From Obrimoposthia wandeli (lineage: Eukaryota), in assembly GCA_977020255.1 (NCBI GenBank), contig CDROCS010000506.1:2666001-2730000 (forward strand): a DNA stretch of 64,000 nt. Direction: 5' to 3'. Positions 3-31,317 of this stretch are shown here, piece after piece. The position numbers and the translations under genes are program-made. Positions within the stretch are counted from its first letter, which is position 1. Each line of letters starts with the position of its first letter. The notes under the pieces are model-generated. The model was given only the letters and a program-made list of their open reading frames with translations. It had not been told where the DNA came from and searched no databases.

Positions 3-3000
3 GTGGCGAAAAAAGTCGTGCTCGACGTGATGTTGAAAACACCGGAAGTAAAAACGGGTTTGGAGATATTCAATGTAAATAATACGGTCTTTGAAAAAAT
101 TAAGCTGCTTAAACATGATGGTGGTCGAATTATTTCGGGTATTAGATCTTATGATTCGAGTGATTACACCGCTAATCTAGCAGATTATAAAGACAATGTA
201 AGTCTATTGAGAAGTCAGGTCGACAGAGTCGTGACGTCCGTCGATGCTCGGTCAGCATTGTGTGAAAGTCTTTATGAAGGCTATCGTTATTTATATGGTG
301 AAAACGTATATTTTGGTGATGATCATGGGCTTATTCCTAGTCCAAAACGAGACAAAAAAGTGGAACGTGATGGGACGTATATCACGCCGCTTGATTGGAC
401 TAGAACATGTCAAACGGAAGCCTATATTATTATTGTTACCGCAGGATATAAGGAGACAGATCATGACTCGAACAGATTTATTACTTGTCAAAATCATGAT
501 GGTGAAGCAAATTCAAAAATAGACGCTTTAACGCAAGAGTTAGCTATAGCTCAGCCAAACTTAAAGTTGCTTGCAGATTCGGATTATAGATCATTATCTG
601 ATACCGCACATGCGGCAAGGACGGTTGAAACCGAAATGAAGTCTAAGTTTGGTTTCTTATCGGACTGTACTATCGAGAATAAATTACCGCAATTGGCACA
701 TTATCTCTATAACAATGACATGAATGGTGATGATAGTGACGGCAATCAGCACATTGCTACATATACTGTTGGCGTTAATGTTGAGAATGGCAGTAAAGCC
801 TTGTTAGAAAAAACGGCCACATCGGGTGGCGGTGAGTTTTTCAATGCTGAAACGGCTACGGAGTTAAGAGAAAAACTTAAATTAGCGTTGGGTGATATCG
901 TTGCTAGGCAGAAGACTACTACTGCGACAGTGACGACATCAATAAATTCGAATAATTCGACACAAAGTGATAAGACTGTTTATTTTACAATGTTTGAGCC
1001 CGCTCAAAGTAGTAAATGGAACGGCAATTTAAAAAAATTGGTGATTGAAAATGGTGTGTTAAATGCGTGGAACATGCAAGCAAGTTTAGCGACAAGCACT
1101 AATTTGACTCCTGCACTTTCATCTACAAACGGTGCCTTTTTCGCAGATGGACTGTATTCAGGATGGAGTAATTCACCCGGACTTGATTCAGTGGAGGTTG
1201 GTGGCGTCGTCGAAGCATTCAATAGCCGAGATGTGTCTATACCACGAAAAGTATACGTAAATAACGGTAATGACAGTATTTTATGCGAGGTCACTCTGGA
1301 TAATTTGAAAGTAGTGTTAGGGATAAGTACGGGTGCGTGTATCAATTCAGATAGTGCTTCTCCACCGTCTACATCACCTGATTCTGAAGATGTTATCGAA
1401 GCTCAAAACATCGCTTTAGCAGCGCAGTTAGATGTTGATGTTGAAGCTTTATCTGCAACAGTGAAGTGGCTTAATGGTTTGAATGATACTGGAACTGCAT
1501 TCAGGGATGATATTTTCGGTGATCCTATGCACTCTGCACCACTCGTTGTTAAATATGATGATGTTTCTCGGATCTTCATTGGAACCAACGCTGGATTTTT
1601 CCATGCGTTTAAAGATAATGGCAATACTGTTGAAGAAGAGTGGGCTTTTATTCCCGCAGACTTACTCAAGAGTGCAATATCACTACGTTATGATTCTACA
1701 ATAACAGATCGTGTTTATGGTGTTGATAGTACTGCTGTTGATGCGGAGTATGGTGATTCAAAACATATCATTACCTTTGGTCTTAGGAGGGGCGGCAGTG
1801 CTTATTACTCCTTTAATGTTGATAAGGGGCTTATATCTGGTTCGGCAGAGAAGCCCACGCTTCACTGGATTATGAAGAATACCGGCACTGGTGATTTTGC
1901 AAGTTTAGGTCAAACATGGTCAATACCAATAGTCACTAAAATCTATAGAGGGTTTGAGAATGAATTGAATTCAAACCCGGTTCTGATTTTTGGAGGTGGA
2001 TATGATGTTGGCAAAGACAATTGTGGCATAAATGGTAGTTCAGAATGCGATGATACCCTTGGCCGCAGTATTTATATTATCGATATTAAAGATAAGTCAG
2101 TTATCAGTTCATTTGTTTTCACTGGAGAGTGTGATGATGCCAAGTGGGATTGTATTACTGATAGTATCGCGGGTAAATTATCTGTGCTTGATAGTGATGG
2201 CGATGGATATTCAGACCGTATTTATGCTGCCGATACTGGTGGTAATATTTATCGTATCGACACACCCAATACTTATTCAGATAATGATCAGAGAACAGTC
2301 GATACTGAAGGATGGTCATTAAGGTTAATTGCTCAACTGGGAAGTAAAAAGATTGGAACTTCTGATCGCCGTTTCTTCACTGAGCCGTCGATTGTTAGAG
2401 CTGTAAATCAAAATAGACGAGCTTACGATGGACTGCTAATAGGCAGTGGAGATATTAGCCATCCTAATTCGAATAAAGTTACAGAAGATTATATGTTCAA
2501 TATTAAGGATCTTGATTTAACGCCTGTAGTATGGGTAGCAAGTGATGAGGTCGACTCGTCAACTTATTCTGTTGCTGCAAAAGCGCGTAAACAGCCTATC
2601 CAATTTAATGATCTGACTCTTATTGATGATTCTAAAATCACAGTTACAACTGATTCAAATGATAATGGTTGGGCTTATACACTATCGAAAGACAAAGGTC
2701 AGAAAATTTTAGGTAATGCGGTCGTTATCGATGGGGTTGTTAATTTTAACAGTTATAGTCCATTTAGTAGTACGGTAGTTGTTAATAATGGGTCGGAGTG
2801 TTTACTCGCGCAAACGGGAAATAGTCATTTTTATCAAGTGAATTTAAATACAGGTAAACTTAAAACGTATAAAAAATTAGAAAACGTTATCGCTAAAGAA
2901 CTTTCTATTCATTCCGAAATAAATAATTACAATGACCCCATATTACGATTATTAGGGGCTGGTAAAGGTGATGATTCTGCAAGCGAAGGCGGGGCTCCAT

Positions 3001-3074
3001 CAGGCACTATCGATACAGAAGTAACGCTGAGTCCACGTCCTATCTACCGTTACTTCAATGAGGCTGCCCAATGA
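3..3074 (+). CDS. pilY1: Type IV pilus tip adhesin PilY1/PilC family (probably 5'-truncated by window)
   Basis: PilY1 beta-propeller motifs (FGDPMHSAP, EEEWAFIP, LGQTWSIP, FGGGYD, DSDGDGYSDRIYAAD Ca loop); overlaps pilE. Confidence 0.88.
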   Translation: MAKKVVLDVMLKTPEVKTGLEIFNVNNTVFEKIKLLKHDGGRIISGIRSYDSSDYTANLADYKDNVSLLRSQVDRVVTSVDARSALCESLYEGYRYLYGENVYFGDDHGLIPSPKRDKKVERDGTYITPLDWTRTCQTEAYIIIVTAGYKETDHDSNRFITCQNHDGEANSKIDALTQELAIAQPNLKLLADSDYRSLSDTAHAARTVETEMKSKFGFLSDCTIENKLPQLAHYLYNNDMNGDDSDGNQHIATYTVGVNVENGSKALLEKTATSGGGEFFNAETATELREKLKLALGDIVARQKTTTATVTTSINSNNSTQSDKTVYFTMFEPAQSSKWNGNLKKLVIENGVLNAWNMQASLATSTNLTPALSSTNGAFFADGLYSGWSNSPGLDSVEVGGVVEAFNSRDVSIPRKVYVNNGNDSILCEVTLDNLKVVLGISTGACINSDSASPPSTSPDSEDVIEAQNIALAAQLDVDVEALSATVKWLNGLNDTGTAFRDDIFGDPMHSAPLVVKYDDVSRIFIGTNAGFFHAFKDNGNTVEEEWAFIPADLLKSAISLRYDSTITDRVYGVDSTAVDAEYGDSKHIITFGLRRGGSAYYSFNVDKGLISGSAEKPTLHWIMKNTGTGDFASLGQTWSIPIVTKIYRGFENELNSNPVLIFGGGYDVGKDNCGINGSSECDDTLGRSIYIIDIKDKSVISSFVFTGECDDAKWDCITDSIAGKLSVLDSDGDGYSDRIYAADTGGNIYRIDTPNTYSDNDQRTVDTEGWSLRLIAQLGSKKIGTSDRRFFTEPSIVRAVNQNRRAYDGLLIGSGDISHPNSNKVTEDYMFNIKDLDLTPVVWVASDEVDSSTYSVAAKARKQPIQFNDLTLIDDSKITVTTDSNDNGWAYTLSKDKGQKILGNAVVIDGVVNFNSYSPFSSTVVVNNGSECLLAQTGNSHFYQVNLNTGKLKTYKKLENVIAKELSIHSEINNYNDPILRLLGAGKGDDSASEGGAPSGTIDTEVTLSPRPIYRYFNEAAQ

Positions 3075-3505
3075 TGACAGCTAAACAAACCGGCTTTACC
3101 CTCGTCGAATTAATGATCGTCGTCGCGATTGTCGGTATTTTAGCAGGTATTGGTTATCCATCTTACAGTGCTTATATTATCGATAATAATCGTAATGATG
3201 CGAAAGCAGCCTTATATAAAGCGCAGTTATTACAAGAACAGTATTATTTAGATAATGGTCAATATGCGACGTCATTAGCCAGTGGCGCGACGGGTACATT
3301 ATCAGGTTGGAGTGATAGCAGTGACTATTATACCTTTGCATTAGATCCGAGTAGCAGTACCAGTAGTTACACACTCATTGCGACTGTTGCAGCATCAAGC
3401 TCACAAGCTACAGATTCAGATTGTGCTTCATTCACGATTGATCACTTTGGTGTGACTACCTCGTTGGATAGCACAAATACAGTGACAACTGATTGTTGGA
3501 GATAG
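3071..3505 (+). CDS. pilE: Type IV minor pilin PilE
   Basis: Prepilin motif GFTLVELMIVVAIVGIL, YPSY motif, C-terminal Cys pair; follows pilY1. Confidence 0.88.
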   Translation: MMTAKQTGFTLVELMIVVAIVGILAGIGYPSYSAYIIDNNRNDAKAALYKAQLLQEQYYLDNGQYATSLASGATGTLSGWSDSSDYYTFALDPSSSTSSYTLIATVAASSSQATDSDCASFTIDHFGVTTSLDSTNTVTTDCWR

Positions 3506-3615
3506 CAAGTTTAGTGATTTCATCGATTTAATTGCTTGTCTGATTGGCAATTTGGATTTGCTTCGGTATGCTAGAACTATATTTAGGTATGTAAATAGTT
3601 ATATTTAAGGGCTAA

Positions 3616-8347: not shown

Positions 8348-8539
8348 ATGCTAATATTGACACGCCGAGTTGGCGAAACACTTATGATTGGTGATGAAGT
8401 TACAGTTACCGTTCTAGGTGTTAAAGGGAATCAAGTTCGTATCGGTGTTAATGCGCCTAAAGAAGTATCTGTTCATCGTGAAGAGATCTACATGCGAATT
8501 CAAGCAGAAAAAGGCGAAAGCCCTGAAGGCAACTTCTAA
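8348..8539 (+). CDS. csrA: Carbon storage regulator CsrA
   Basis: [48 protein letters not shown]. Confidence 0.99.
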
Positions 8540-27181: not shown

Positions 27182-28213
27182 CTACTGCTTCGCTAATTTA
27201 TTAATCACATCATTTGCTTCAGACATTATACGTTCGACGATCACGGCTACGCTGGGTACATCGTTGATCAACCCCTGCGATTGACCAATAAACTGTACAC
27301 CTGTTGTCAGGTCACCCTTGATCGTAGCAGCTTCTAATTTCTCTGTAGCAGCACCAAAATAAGACAGTTGCTTGATCTTGTCGAACTGGACAAACACACC
27401 AGCAACCAATTTCCAAAATGGTAAATCAACCATTTTAGCGGCCTTTACCGATTTGAATAATGCCAGTGCAAAATTCATTGGTTTTTTAGTCGCTTTAATA
27501 GAAGCGGGCGTTTTTAGGACGCGAGCATAAAGACCATCAAAGTTCTTAGAGTAGATAGTATCGTTTTCTGATTTACCGGTAATGACTTGCTTAACATCAT
27601 TATGTAGTGCGCTTTCTTGGCTGGTGGCAAAACGAGAACCCATTGCGACACCTTCAGCGCCAAGTGCTAACGCTGCGGCAAGACCACGACCATCAGCAAA
27701 ACCACCAGTTGCGATCACGGGAATATCAACTGCGCTGGCAATCGCAGGTACAAGCACTAATGAGGTTACATCACCACCGTGTGCTGCAGCCTCATGGCCT
27801 GTTACCATCAATGCATCAGCACCTATCGATTGCGCTGACTTAGCGTGTTTTTCATTGACGACAGTGGCGATGACTTTACCGCCATAAGCGTGAACCTGTT
27901 CGACAATCCAGTCACCTTTACCTAATGAAAAGTTAATCACAGGTACTTGTTCTTCTATACCTACTTTGGCATTTTCTTTTGCACCTGGCATCAGCAGTGT
28001 TGCGCCAATACCAAAGGGTTTATCGGTGAGTTCACGGATCTTTCTAATTGAAGCGCGGGTTTCTTCTTGGCTTAACGGCCCTGTTGCTAGAATGCCTAGT
28101 CCGCCAGCATTGGAAACTGCGGCAACAAGCTCTGGTTTTGATATCCAGCTCATTCCAGGCAAGACGATAGGGTGCTCAATGCCTAATAATTCTGTAATCC
28201 GTGTTTTCATCAC
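27182..28213 (-). CDS. Nitronate monooxygenase/FabK-like flavin oxidoreductase
   Basis: AVSNAGGLG, GHEAAAHG, ATGGFADGRGLAAALALGAEGVAMGSRF. Confidence 0.85.
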   Translation of the reverse strand: MMKTRITELLGIEHPIVLPGMSWISKPELVAAVSNAGGLGILATGPLSQEETRASIRKIRELTDKPFGIGATLLMPGAKENAKVGIEEQVPVINFSLGKGDWIVEQVHAYGGKVIATVVNEKHAKSAQSIGADALMVTGHEAAAHGGDVTSLVLVPAIASAVDIPVIATGGFADGRGLAAALALGAEGVAMGSRFATSQESALHNDVKQVITGKSENDTIYSKNFDGLYARVLKTPASIKATKKPMNFALALFKSVKAAKMVDLPFWKLVAGVFVQFDKIKQLSYFGAATEKLEAATIKGDLTTGVQFIGQSQGLINDVPSVAVIVERIMSEANDVINKLAKQ

Positions 28214-28401: not shown

Positions 28402-28522
28402 GTGTAAGACATCGACTATTGAGGTGTCGGGATATTGTCATTACGTGAGTGTGTTTATATCGGTGTTATGTCTAGTCTTACACTCGTAAAAAGAAGTTAA
28501 GTATTTATTTATCAATGGCTTA
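28402..28522 (+). promoter_or_regulatory. GacA/UvrY-type half-sites and IHF site upstream of the CsrB-like RNA
   Basis: GTGTAAGAC (28402-28410) and its inverse GTCTTACAC (28475-28483); TATCAATGGCTTA (28510-28522) matches IHF WATCAANNNNTTR. Confidence 0.55.
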
Positions 28523-28652
28523 GTGTTTTGTGGCGTTTATCTCTTGTAAATAAATGTAATTTAATCGTTTTTAGTCGCTTGTTGCTTAGCGTTAATCACG
28601 TATATTTATAAGCACAAGGACGAGGCGGGAACATCTTCAGGAAGAAGATTAA

Positions 28653-29460
28653 AGGATTAAGTTGCAGGATGCGACAAAAGGACATCTTCAGGAAGAAGAC
28701 AAAGGATTAAGTTGCAGGATGCGACACAAGGAACATCTTCAGGAAGAAGACAAAGGATTAAGTTGCAGGATGCAGCACAGGACATCTTCAGGAAGAAGAC
28801 AAAGGATTAAGTTGCAGGATGCAGCACAGGACATCTTCAGGAAGAAGACAAAGGATTAAGTTGCAGGATGCAGCACAGGACATCTTCAGGAAGAAGACCA
28901 AAGGATTAAGTTGCAGGATGCAGCACAGGACATCTTCAGGAAGAAGACAAAGGATTAAGTTGCAGGATGCAGCACAGGACATCTTCAGGACGAAGAGTAA
29001 AGGATTAAGTTGCAGGATGCAGCACAGGACATCTTCAGGACGAAGAACAAAGGATTAAGTTGCAGGATGCAGCACAGGACATCTTCAGGACGAAGAACAA
29101 AGGATTAAGTTGCAGGATGCAGCACAGGACATCTTCAGGACGAAGAACAAAGGATTAAGTTGCAGGATGCAGCACAGGACATCTTCAGGACGAAGAACAA
29201 AGGATTAAGTTGCAGGATGCAGCACAGGACATCTTCAGGACGAAGAACAAAGGATTAAGTTGCAGGATGCAGCACAGGACATCTTCAGGACGAAGAACAA
29301 AGGATTAAGTTGCAGGATGCAGCACAGGACATCTTCAGGACGAAGAACAAAGGATTAAGTTGCAGGACGCGACAAAAGGACATCTTCAGGAAGAAGACAA
29401 AGGATTAAGTTGCAGGACGCGACACAAGGACAGCTTCAGGAAGAAGACCAAAGGATTGCG
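28653..29460 (+). repeat. Tandem array of 16 full ~50-bp units plus a partial 17th
   Basis: Consensus AGGATTAAGTTGCAGGATGCAGCACAGGACATCTTCAGGACGAAGAACAA; period 49-51 bp, no unique spacers. Confidence 0.97.
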
Positions 29461-29619
29461 TTACAGGATGTAACATAGAAATAAATCAGGATCGATTTAT
29501 TGTGCTAGGAAGGCAAAAGGACACTCCGACGGATTGGGAAGTGGAAATTTAACGGAATAAATAGAGTCAGGATTTAGCAGGGTTGCTACGCGTTTCATGG
29601 ATTGAGATATATAGACTTT

Positions 29620-29646
29620 AGGGCGGCACATTGTGCCGCCTTTTCT
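29620..29646 (+). terminator. Terminator of the CsrB-like RNA
   Basis: GGCGGCAC/GTGCCGCC followed by TTTT. Confidence 0.85.
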
Positions 29647-29775
29647 ATATCTGCGATTTAATAAATCACATTTGGCTTTCCACCTGCACACTCTTCTATT
29701 ACACCTTTCTACTACATGCCTTCATTTCATATGTTTTATATTTAAAAATCATTAGGCGCTTCAACATAATTATTG

Positions 29776-30057: not shown

Positions 30058-31317
30058 TTATTTCTTCTTATTCTTCTTAGTACGTTTTTTAGCTTTCAGT
30101 TTCGCTTTTGCAGATACTTTATTCTTACCTGTTGCTGCTACTTTCGCTTTTTTCTTCGTTTTCGATACCGCAATTTTATTCTTTGGTTTCAATTCTTGAA
30201 TTACACGACGTTTAATCGTTTCTTCAGTGTAACGTTCAATTTTACCAAAGATACGTAGATCATGCGCTTCAACCAATGAAATCGCTGTACCTTTCTTACC
30301 GGCACGTGCAGTACGGCCAATACGGTGAACATAAATTTCAGCACTACGTGGTAAATCAAAGTTAAATACATGGCTTACATCTTGTACATCAATACCGCGA
30401 GCGGCGACGTCAGTAGCGACAAGTACTTTTACTTTATCATTTTTAAATTGATTCAGTGAGCGAGTACGTTTTGCTTGGTCCATTTCACCACGTAAATAAG
30501 CACACGGGATCTCTTGAGACTGTAAATAGCTTACTAGTTCAGCTAGACGTTCACGGGTTTTTACAAACACGATAGAACGAGTAGTGCTTTCGTCACGTAA
30601 CCAATGTACTAACAAAGCTTGTTTGTGTGCGTGATTATCAACATAGTGCATGAATTGATGAATCTTAGCTTTTTCTCTACGTGAAGGATTAGCTGTAAAT
30701 TCAGCAGGCTCTTTCAATAGTTCTTCAGCAAAACGCTCAATACCACGGCCTTCTAGGGTCGCAGAAAATAGCATTGTTTGTTGACGACGTGTCATTTCTT
30801 CAGTGATTTTTTTCACGTCATCATAGAAACCCATATCTAACATACGGTCAGCTTCATCTAAAATAAGTACTTCAACAGCAGCACATTCAAATGCATCACG
30901 ACGGATATATTCTAATAAACGACCTGGTGTTGCGATAACAATATCAAGGCTGTTTTTTAAAACTTCAGCGTGTAATGCATAATCCACACCACCCGTTATC
31001 ATTGATACTTTATGGTCAGTATAGGCTGCTAGCATTTTAGCTTGCTGGAATACCTGACTTGCGAGTTCTCGCGTTGGCGTCAAGATAAGTACGCGTCCAG
31101 GGCCTAATTCACGACGTGGAAAGTCAATCAGATGCTGAAAAGCTGGTAATAAAAACGCCAGCGTTTTACCTGTACCTGTCGGTGCAGATGCAAGGATATC
31201 TCTACCATCCATGGCAGTTGGCAATACTTGTTGTTGAATCATTGTTGGTTGAACAAGATTATTGTCAGTAAGTGCGACTATTAATTGATGGTCTAGATCG
31301 AGACTTTCGAAGTCCAT
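30058..31317 (-). CDS. srmB: DEAD-box RNA helicase SrmB
   Basis: APTGTGKT, PTRELA, DEADRMLDMGF, SAT, HRIGRTARAG, basic tail; near trmN6. Confidence 0.95.
   Translation of the reverse strand: MDFESLDLDHQLIVALTDNNLVQPTMIQQQVLPTAMDGRDILASAPTGTGKTLAFLLPAFQHLIDFPRRELGPGRVLILTPTRELASQVFQQAKMLAAYTDHKVSMITGGVDYALHAEVLKNSLDIVIATPGRLLEYIRRDAFECAAVEVLILDEADRMLDMGFYDDVKKITEEMTRRQQTMLFSATLEGRGIERFAEELLKEPAEFTANPSRREKAKIHQFMHYVDNHAHKQALLVHWLRDESTTRSIVFVKTRERLAELVSYLQSQEIPCAYLRGEMDQAKRTRSLNQFKNDKVKVLVATDVAARGIDVQDVSHVFNFDLPRSAEIYVHRIGRTARAGKKGTAISLVEAHDLRIFGKIERYTEETIKRRVIQELKPKNKIAVSKTKKKAKVAATGKNKVSAKAKLKAKKRTKKNKKK

Follow-up and report, generated by a model that had tools for sequence, protein, structure and literature searches.

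A giant, module-built member of the CsrB/RsmB RNA family with a variable number of 50-nt units in Moritella

A 64,000-nt stretch of contig CDROCS010000506.1 of assembly GCA_977020255.1, filed under Obrimoposthia wandeli (positions 2,666,001 to 2,730,000, forward strand; hereafter the window, in whose own numbering positions are given), contains an array of 50-bp tandem repeats that is the body of a single plus-strand gene of about 1,040 nt (28613-29650). A covariance model, the anatomy of the gene and the presence of CsrA and UvrY place this gene in the CsrB/RsmB family of regulatory RNAs. We put the probability that it encodes a giant, module-built family member, a putative sponge that sequesters CsrA, at about 0.8. 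The host is a Moritella; the protein of the adjacent NMO-family gene shares 96-97% identity with its counterparts in Moritella sp. PE36, JT01 and M. dasanensis, and the source assembly is metagenome-like, with 1.35 Gb of sequence, 23 uvrC matches, 6 csrA matches and many bacterial genomes. No second copy or strain variant of the giant gene was found in this assembly.

Gene anatomy and family assignment

Tandem Repeats Finder reported one array at 28631-29470, with a period of 50, 16.8 copies and 94% matches. When units were cut at the recurring AAGGATT phase, this array resolved into 16 full head-to-tail units of 49-51 bp (28652-29450) and a degenerate 17th unit from 29451. Units 8-14 (29000-29349) are identical 50-mers within a perfect period-50 run of 369 bp (28999-29367); the initial annotation had described seven identical central units at 29001-29350, which is the same block read in another phase and likewise a single distinct 50-mer. 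Units 3, 4 and 6 are identical 49-mers, unit 5 carries one extra C, and the GCGACAAAAGG / GCGACACAAGG variants are common to units 1-2 and 15-16, so that the sharing of variants between the first and last units, also part of that annotation, is borne out. The order of unit types along the array is A A C C C' C D' D x7 A' A''. Every unit retains four GGA motifs (64 in the 16 units), and the entire RNA of 1,038 nt holds 78 GGA, 72 AGGA and 1 TCC. The mean after mononucleotide shuffling is 30.7 GGA (standard deviation 4.3), and no other 1,038-nt stretch of the window has more than 26.

The gene is intergenic, lying between an NMO-family gene (27182-28213, minus strand) and a DEAD-box helicase gene (30058-31317, minus strand). 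A coding repeat was rejected, as the period of 50 is no multiple of 3 and each frame of the array contains 5-6 stops. The parts of the gene and its presumed partner are as follows.

28403-28419, plus strand: upstream box TGTAAGACATCGACTAT, at about -210 from the start; near-invariant in 14 Moritella genes.
28472-28485, plus strand: upstream box CTAGTCTTACACTC, at about -135; conserved in the 14-gene alignment, and containing TCTTACA, the inverted complement of the left box, 66 bp off.
28579-28606, plus strand: promoter, with a weak -35 (TTGTTG, 28579-28584), a 16-bp spacer and a -10 (TATATT, 28601-28606); the block CGTATATTTATAAGCACAAGGAC is invariant in 14/14 genes.
28613-28651, plus strand: 5' leader, made up of an incomplete, degenerate unit that has a single GGA-loop hairpin and 3 GGA.
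28652-29450, plus strand: 16 full tandem units, each with hairpins A and B and two single-stranded GGA; 64 GGA.
29000-29349, plus strand: seven identical 50-nt units, the youngest block and the longest identical run among the compared Moritella arrays.
29451-29619, plus strand: degenerate 17th unit and unique 3' tail (about 170 nt), with 11 GGA; 86-92% identical across Moritella species and aligning with the 3' portion of Rfam's CsrB model.
29620-29650, plus strand: Rho-independent terminator, a 10-bp stem (29620-29642, 7 G-C pairs) followed by a T-rich tail; kept in all Moritella copies.
8348-8539, plus strand: csrA (63 aa), 20 kb upstream, whose product is the presumed partner of the RNA; NCBIfam NF002469 and Pfam CsrA matches.

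Transcription would start near 28613, judging from the position of the promoter elements. A promoter scan of the window did not pick up the promoter of the giant gene because its -35 is poor.

Three overlapping full-model matches to Rfam CsrB (RF00018) run along the gene with 85.9, 81.3 and 76.8 bits against a gathering score of 71, and the last of them takes in the terminator, in agreement with the initial annotation, which had treated the array as part of an RNA that sequesters CsrA. Family membership was judged by the criteria of PMC1488887, and the gene combines the covariance score with an intergenic, non-coding position, a high GGA density, a Rho-independent terminator and GGA predicted in loops or free regions. 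The CsrA protein scores 118.6 bits against the NCBIfam equivalog NF002469 (cut-off 73), and a UvrY/GacA orthologue adjoins uvrC on the contig of the giant gene (NF007018, 414.8 bits, cut-off 280). The gene resembles E. coli CsrB, Erwinia RsmB and Vibrio CsrB/C/D in its CAGGAUG-type GGA-loop hairpins, and resembles the family in being intergenic with a Rho-independent terminator, in co-occurring with CsrA and UvrY/GacA and in having several paralogues per genome. Its size sets it apart: it runs to about 1,040 nt with 78 GGA, whereas E. coli CsrB measures about 360 nt and has 22. In published counts, E. coli CsrB and CsrC have 22 and 14 GGA, Pseudoalteromonas Pf1, Pf2 and Pf3 have 25, 21 and 9 (PMC11882849), and V. 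fischeri CsrB1/2 have 21 motif occurrences (PMC1488887); at 78 GGA, the Moritella RNA is the largest family member found, set against the published 22-25 (PMC11882849). A further difference is that, in the body of the gene, a single 50-nt module is repeated in near-perfect tandem, a different number of times in different species.

The giant gene shares its genome with two ordinary CsrB paralogues of about 311-315 nt, located 525 kb away on the same contig (G000:C506:2170146-2170456 and 2171723-2172037, or L060 2147-2457 and 3724-4038; 97.9 and 95.3 bits). Their length is constant across Moritella species (about 285-316 nt), so that the genus combines one modular Csr RNA with two stable ones. 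The two lie 1.3 kb apart and flank one open reading frame (L060 ~2770-3430), judged by eye to encode a candidate pentapeptide-repeat protein, and the pair is kept in every Moritella genome searched. Elsewhere in the source assembly, another bacterium carries three tandem CsrB genes of about 130-140 bits (G000:C1209:42498-44362, L001-L003; C2105:391285-391644, L004).

Upstream of the giant gene, TGTAAGA (28403-28409) and TCTTACA (28476-28482) are conserved across the 14 genes and stand 66 bp apart. The classical UvrY/GacA site is an 18-bp palindrome (PMC1488887), and the box at 28403-28419 is likely to be the left half of such a site; the site would then be split here, a difference from classical CsrB/RsmB genes. 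A 31-nt stretch around this left box has counterparts upstream of both ordinary CsrB paralogues in another Moritella genome, G008. All three Csr small RNA genes of the host have TGTAAGA...TCTTACA-type half-sites set far apart, with a spacing of 66 bp in the giant gene (28403-28485) and about 30-100 bp in the paralogues (L060 ~1915-1990 and ~3510-3615), and a second conserved inverted repeat (CGACTAT / ATAGTCG) lies between the halves of the giant gene in most species. The spaced half-sites may form a split or looped activator site.

Predicted fold and constraint on the units

Each unit is predicted to fold into hairpin A (GUUGC-AGGAY-GCRRC) and hairpin B (CUUC-AGGAM-GAAG), with two further GGA in linkers. 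Single units fold into these two GGA-loop hairpins with z values of -2.3 to -3.8, and hairpin B is retained in the centroid of the full-length fold. The initial annotation had held that substitutions keep the stems paired, and the variant GTTGC/GCAGC is indeed no worse paired than GTTGC/GCGAC, since U can pair with A or with G; the change from GGAAG to GGACG sits in a loop. The comparison was extended to 110 units (46 distinct) from the compared Moritella arrays, leaving out one unit with an assembly gap (N) in the G007 array. All four GGA are invariant in these units, variation being confined to linkers and to the loop base that follows GGA. For hairpin A, 99.6% of cells are paired and there are five alternative 3' arms, most changes being A/G transitions opposite U, and the core of hairpin B shows no variation. 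The hairpin pattern is consistent with structural constraint but weak as proof of it, and the invariance of GGA is a stronger signal of constraint than hairpin covariation.

Unit and gene number across Moritella

A DNA search found the promoter and leader in 12/13 genomes of the family. Units were counted between the invariant leader and the terminator and range from 3 to 17 per gene across 12 Moritella genomes, in 1 to at least 5 tandem gene copies, as follows.

Own genome (megabase-scale contig): 17 units.
G008 (megabase-scale contig): 13 units.
G012 (megabase-scale contig): 11 units.
G005 (megabase-scale contig): 10 units.
G013 (megabase-scale contig): 9 units.
G009 (megabase-scale contig): two tandem genes of 6 and 7 units.
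PE36 (draft): at least 5 tandem genes, with 8, 3, 4 and 10 units and one cut by a contig end.
G003 (metagenome-assembled genome): 3+3 units.

The prediction that unit number could vary thus holds between lineages: on megabase-scale contigs the counts are 17, 13, 11, 10, 9 and 6+7, rather than one invariant number. Each unit step adds or removes four GGA, the figure that had been proposed. Two features of a variable-number tandem repeat (VNTR) are present, namely high-identity head-to-tail repeats and a unit number that differs between related genomes. Three PE36 paralogues whose 260-nt upstream regions are identical carry 3, 4 and 10 units and, within the limits of a draft assembly, unit number therefore appears to change faster than point substitution. 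The tandem copies of PE36 (L009 1-2400, L067 and L085; contigs C93 and C43) hold more than 140 GGA together, the largest total seen. Contigs end at or inside the array in drafts G002, G004, G006, G007 and G010, and G007 also has an internal assembly gap; the array breaks contigs in short-read Moritella drafts at L010, L014, L063-L065, L071, L075 and L077. In practice, the giant gene is systematically missing or truncated in short-read drafts of the genus; this applies to most of the publicly available drafts.

Units resemble one another more within genomes than between them (mean differences of 3.35 vs 4.59; 0/2000 permutations reach this), a case of concerted evolution. Among the compared genomes, 12 interior units (GCAGC type) are private to the own genome. 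The edge units are identical or near-identical to units of other species: unit 16 is the commonest unit and is present in five other genomes, and unit 2 is identical to a G006 unit. The identical run of seven is the longest seen, other Moritella arrays having at most three. This distribution supports a recent expansion of the core, as first proposed. The polarity in that proposal is not clearly borne out: the pattern is nested (old, young, youngest, old), with ancestral-type units at both ends.

A metagenome scan with the invariant leader returned eight contigs, five of which end inside the array. Comparison of these with the genomes revealed contigs with 98-100% identical flanks that differ in unit or gene number. 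L099 and G009 have tails that are 99-100% identical and gene-2 promoters that are 98% identical, with 9+5 vs 6+7 units. L100 and G012 share a 2,037-nt flank at 99.7% identity, with two genes (6 and at least 4 units) in the former vs one 11-unit gene in the latter. The G012 promoter is of the gene-1 type (99.0% identity with L100 gene 1 vs about 78% with gene-2 promoters), and its tail is of the gene-2 type (96.7% with G009/L099 gene 2 vs 93.3-93.8% with gene-1 tails); the G012 gene therefore arose from two tandem paralogues that fused via their arrays. In this chimera (L068/L084 compared with L100 and with L069/L078 of G009), the promoter and 5' units come from gene 1, and the 3' units and tail from gene 2. 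Whole-gene duplication and the fusion of tandem paralogues, both missed by the initial annotation, are part of the dynamics. Recent expansion with a variable unit number is supported between species and suggested within species.

Runs of overlapping CsrB matches at one locus were found in Moritella only, among 121 sampled genomes of the order; elsewhere in the order, separate CsrB genes stand in clusters, up to five of them at intervals of about 700 nt. In other genera such clusters comprise three to five genes at this spacing (G021:C1:4533806-4536939 and similar loci), and G074 and G114 have adjacent partial CsrB matches that may be moderately elongated genes. Four csrB homologues have been described in Photobacterium profundum (PMC1488887) and, as cited in PMC11882849, CsrB1-4 in Vibrio tasmaniensis. 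The literature searched contained no paper linking CsrB with Moritella or with tandem or variable-number repeats. The Moritella arrangement resembles tandem clusters of Csr/Rsm small RNA genes in that duplication raises capacity, with 2 to at least 5 tandem copies in PE36, G003 and G009. It differs from them in that duplication also takes place inside the transcript, as modules, and in that neighbouring genes can fuse.

Proposed mechanism, alternatives and significance

In the mechanism that we propose, the transcript would sequester CsrA, each module presenting two GGA-loop hairpins and two single-stranded GGA, and its transcription would probably depend on BarA/UvrY, with the conserved upstream boxes as the site of action. 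The array would grow and shrink by replication slippage or by unequal recombination between units, with further change through whole-gene duplication and through the fusion of neighbouring copies via their arrays. In the own genome, a derived unit type has probably undergone recent amplification within an older array, leaving ancestral-type units at both edges. If the gene is expressed and its RNA binds CsrA, capacity per transcript would scale with the number of units, each supplying four GGA and perhaps holding two CsrA dimers.

Several observations weigh against this reading. In the minimum-energy fold of the entire RNA, the self-complementary arms of hairpin A pair between units and not locally, although GGA is predicted to be unpaired in either arrangement. 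Covariation is scarce: the compared units contain a single double compensatory change, from G-C to A-U in G013, and strong covariation proof of the hairpins was rejected for this reason. The selection on RNA structure that the initial annotation had invoked is weakly supported, by the invariant GGA and the paired arms of hairpin A more than by compensatory change. No contiguous 18-bp UvrY/GacA palindrome is found upstream of the giant gene. The own unit count rests on assembly sequence, and the within-species cases rest on metagenome contigs, in which short-read assembly may collapse runs of identical units; a difference in whether an entire terminator-promoter segment is there, as between L100 and G012, cannot be such a collapse artefact. 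That the count of 17, and especially the seven identical units, is an artefact of assembly and the true gene shorter or longer is nevertheless improbable. The metagenome-like source, with its 1.35 Gb and many bacteria, and the breaking of short-read drafts of other Moritella exactly at the array would both favour an artefact, but the contig of 3.78 Mb suggests long reads, for which 0.85 kb would be an easy distance to span, the assembly contains the locus once, and arrays of 9-13 units stand on megabase-scale contigs of five other species. We consider it more improbable still that the array is no CsrA sponge but the repeat RNA of another protein, a set of DNA-level iterons or a dispersed, mobile CsrB-like module. 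Such readings would have to accommodate covariance matches above a curated threshold, a strong strand bias of GGA (78 vs 1), the retention of promoter, leader and terminator across the genus and a non-coding array; the mobile module was rejected, since the unit pattern occurs at a single locus in the 1.35-Gb assembly and all remaining matches are at control level.

If a CsrA sponge is accepted, the question becomes what its variation in length does. The initial annotation had seen in unit number a dial for CsrA sequestration. In its strong form, unit number would be a hypermutable, population-variable dial that shifts free CsrA in graded, heritable and reversible steps, the locus behaving as a contingency-type VNTR whose high-frequency unit changes within populations each retune free CsrA; we regard both statements as unlikely. 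An ideal substrate for slippage is present in the 369 bp of perfect 50-bp periodicity, and the PE36 paralogues that share their upstream region and differ in unit number, together with the near-conspecific contigs that do the same, speak for a dial. Single-unit steps would, however, be buffered by the two constant-length paralogues and by the negative feedback in Csr circuits, and the narrow range of unit totals on megabase-scale contigs (9-17) fits stabilising selection or drift no less than tuning. To the alternative that length variation is a near-neutral by-product of repeat instability, with selection acting on motif integrity and on 'enough' sites only, we give a little less than an even chance. 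The GGA motifs and the core of hairpin B are invariant while unit and gene number vary freely, as this alternative would have it, redundant paralogues are present, and redundancy among multiple Csr small RNAs has been reported (PMC11882849). It is at odds with the fact that no lineage on megabase-scale contigs has fewer than 9 units in total, though deletions should be easy; the long arrays in every such lineage are therefore a hint of selection for high capacity.

The putative sponge also invites comparison with repeat-built systems outside the family. Classical contingency loci use short repeats, located in promoters or coding sequence, as on-off switches of genes, and NORAD is a eukaryotic sponge RNA built of repeats. 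The Moritella gene is like bacterial VNTR or contingency loci and NORAD in that a tandem repeat would set dose in a sponge of repeated protein-binding modules, and in that old units lie at the edges of a homogenised interior. It is unlike classical contingency loci in that its 50-nt unit would adjust by degrees how much a regulatory RNA can sequester, any high-frequency switching being hypothetical. Should the dial prove true, this would be a contingency locus acting through an RNA sponge, with standing variation in unit number in Moritella populations.

The number of predicted CsrA sites on the Moritella RNA changes easily over evolution, and tandem copies of the putative sponge gene can fuse to give a longer RNA. 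In the Csr/Rsm sponges known from textbooks, the effect of binding-site number has mostly been addressed by engineered deletions. Moritella offers a natural series, with 3 to 17 modules in an otherwise constant RNA as well as duplications and a fusion, and the question of dose is therefore directly testable.
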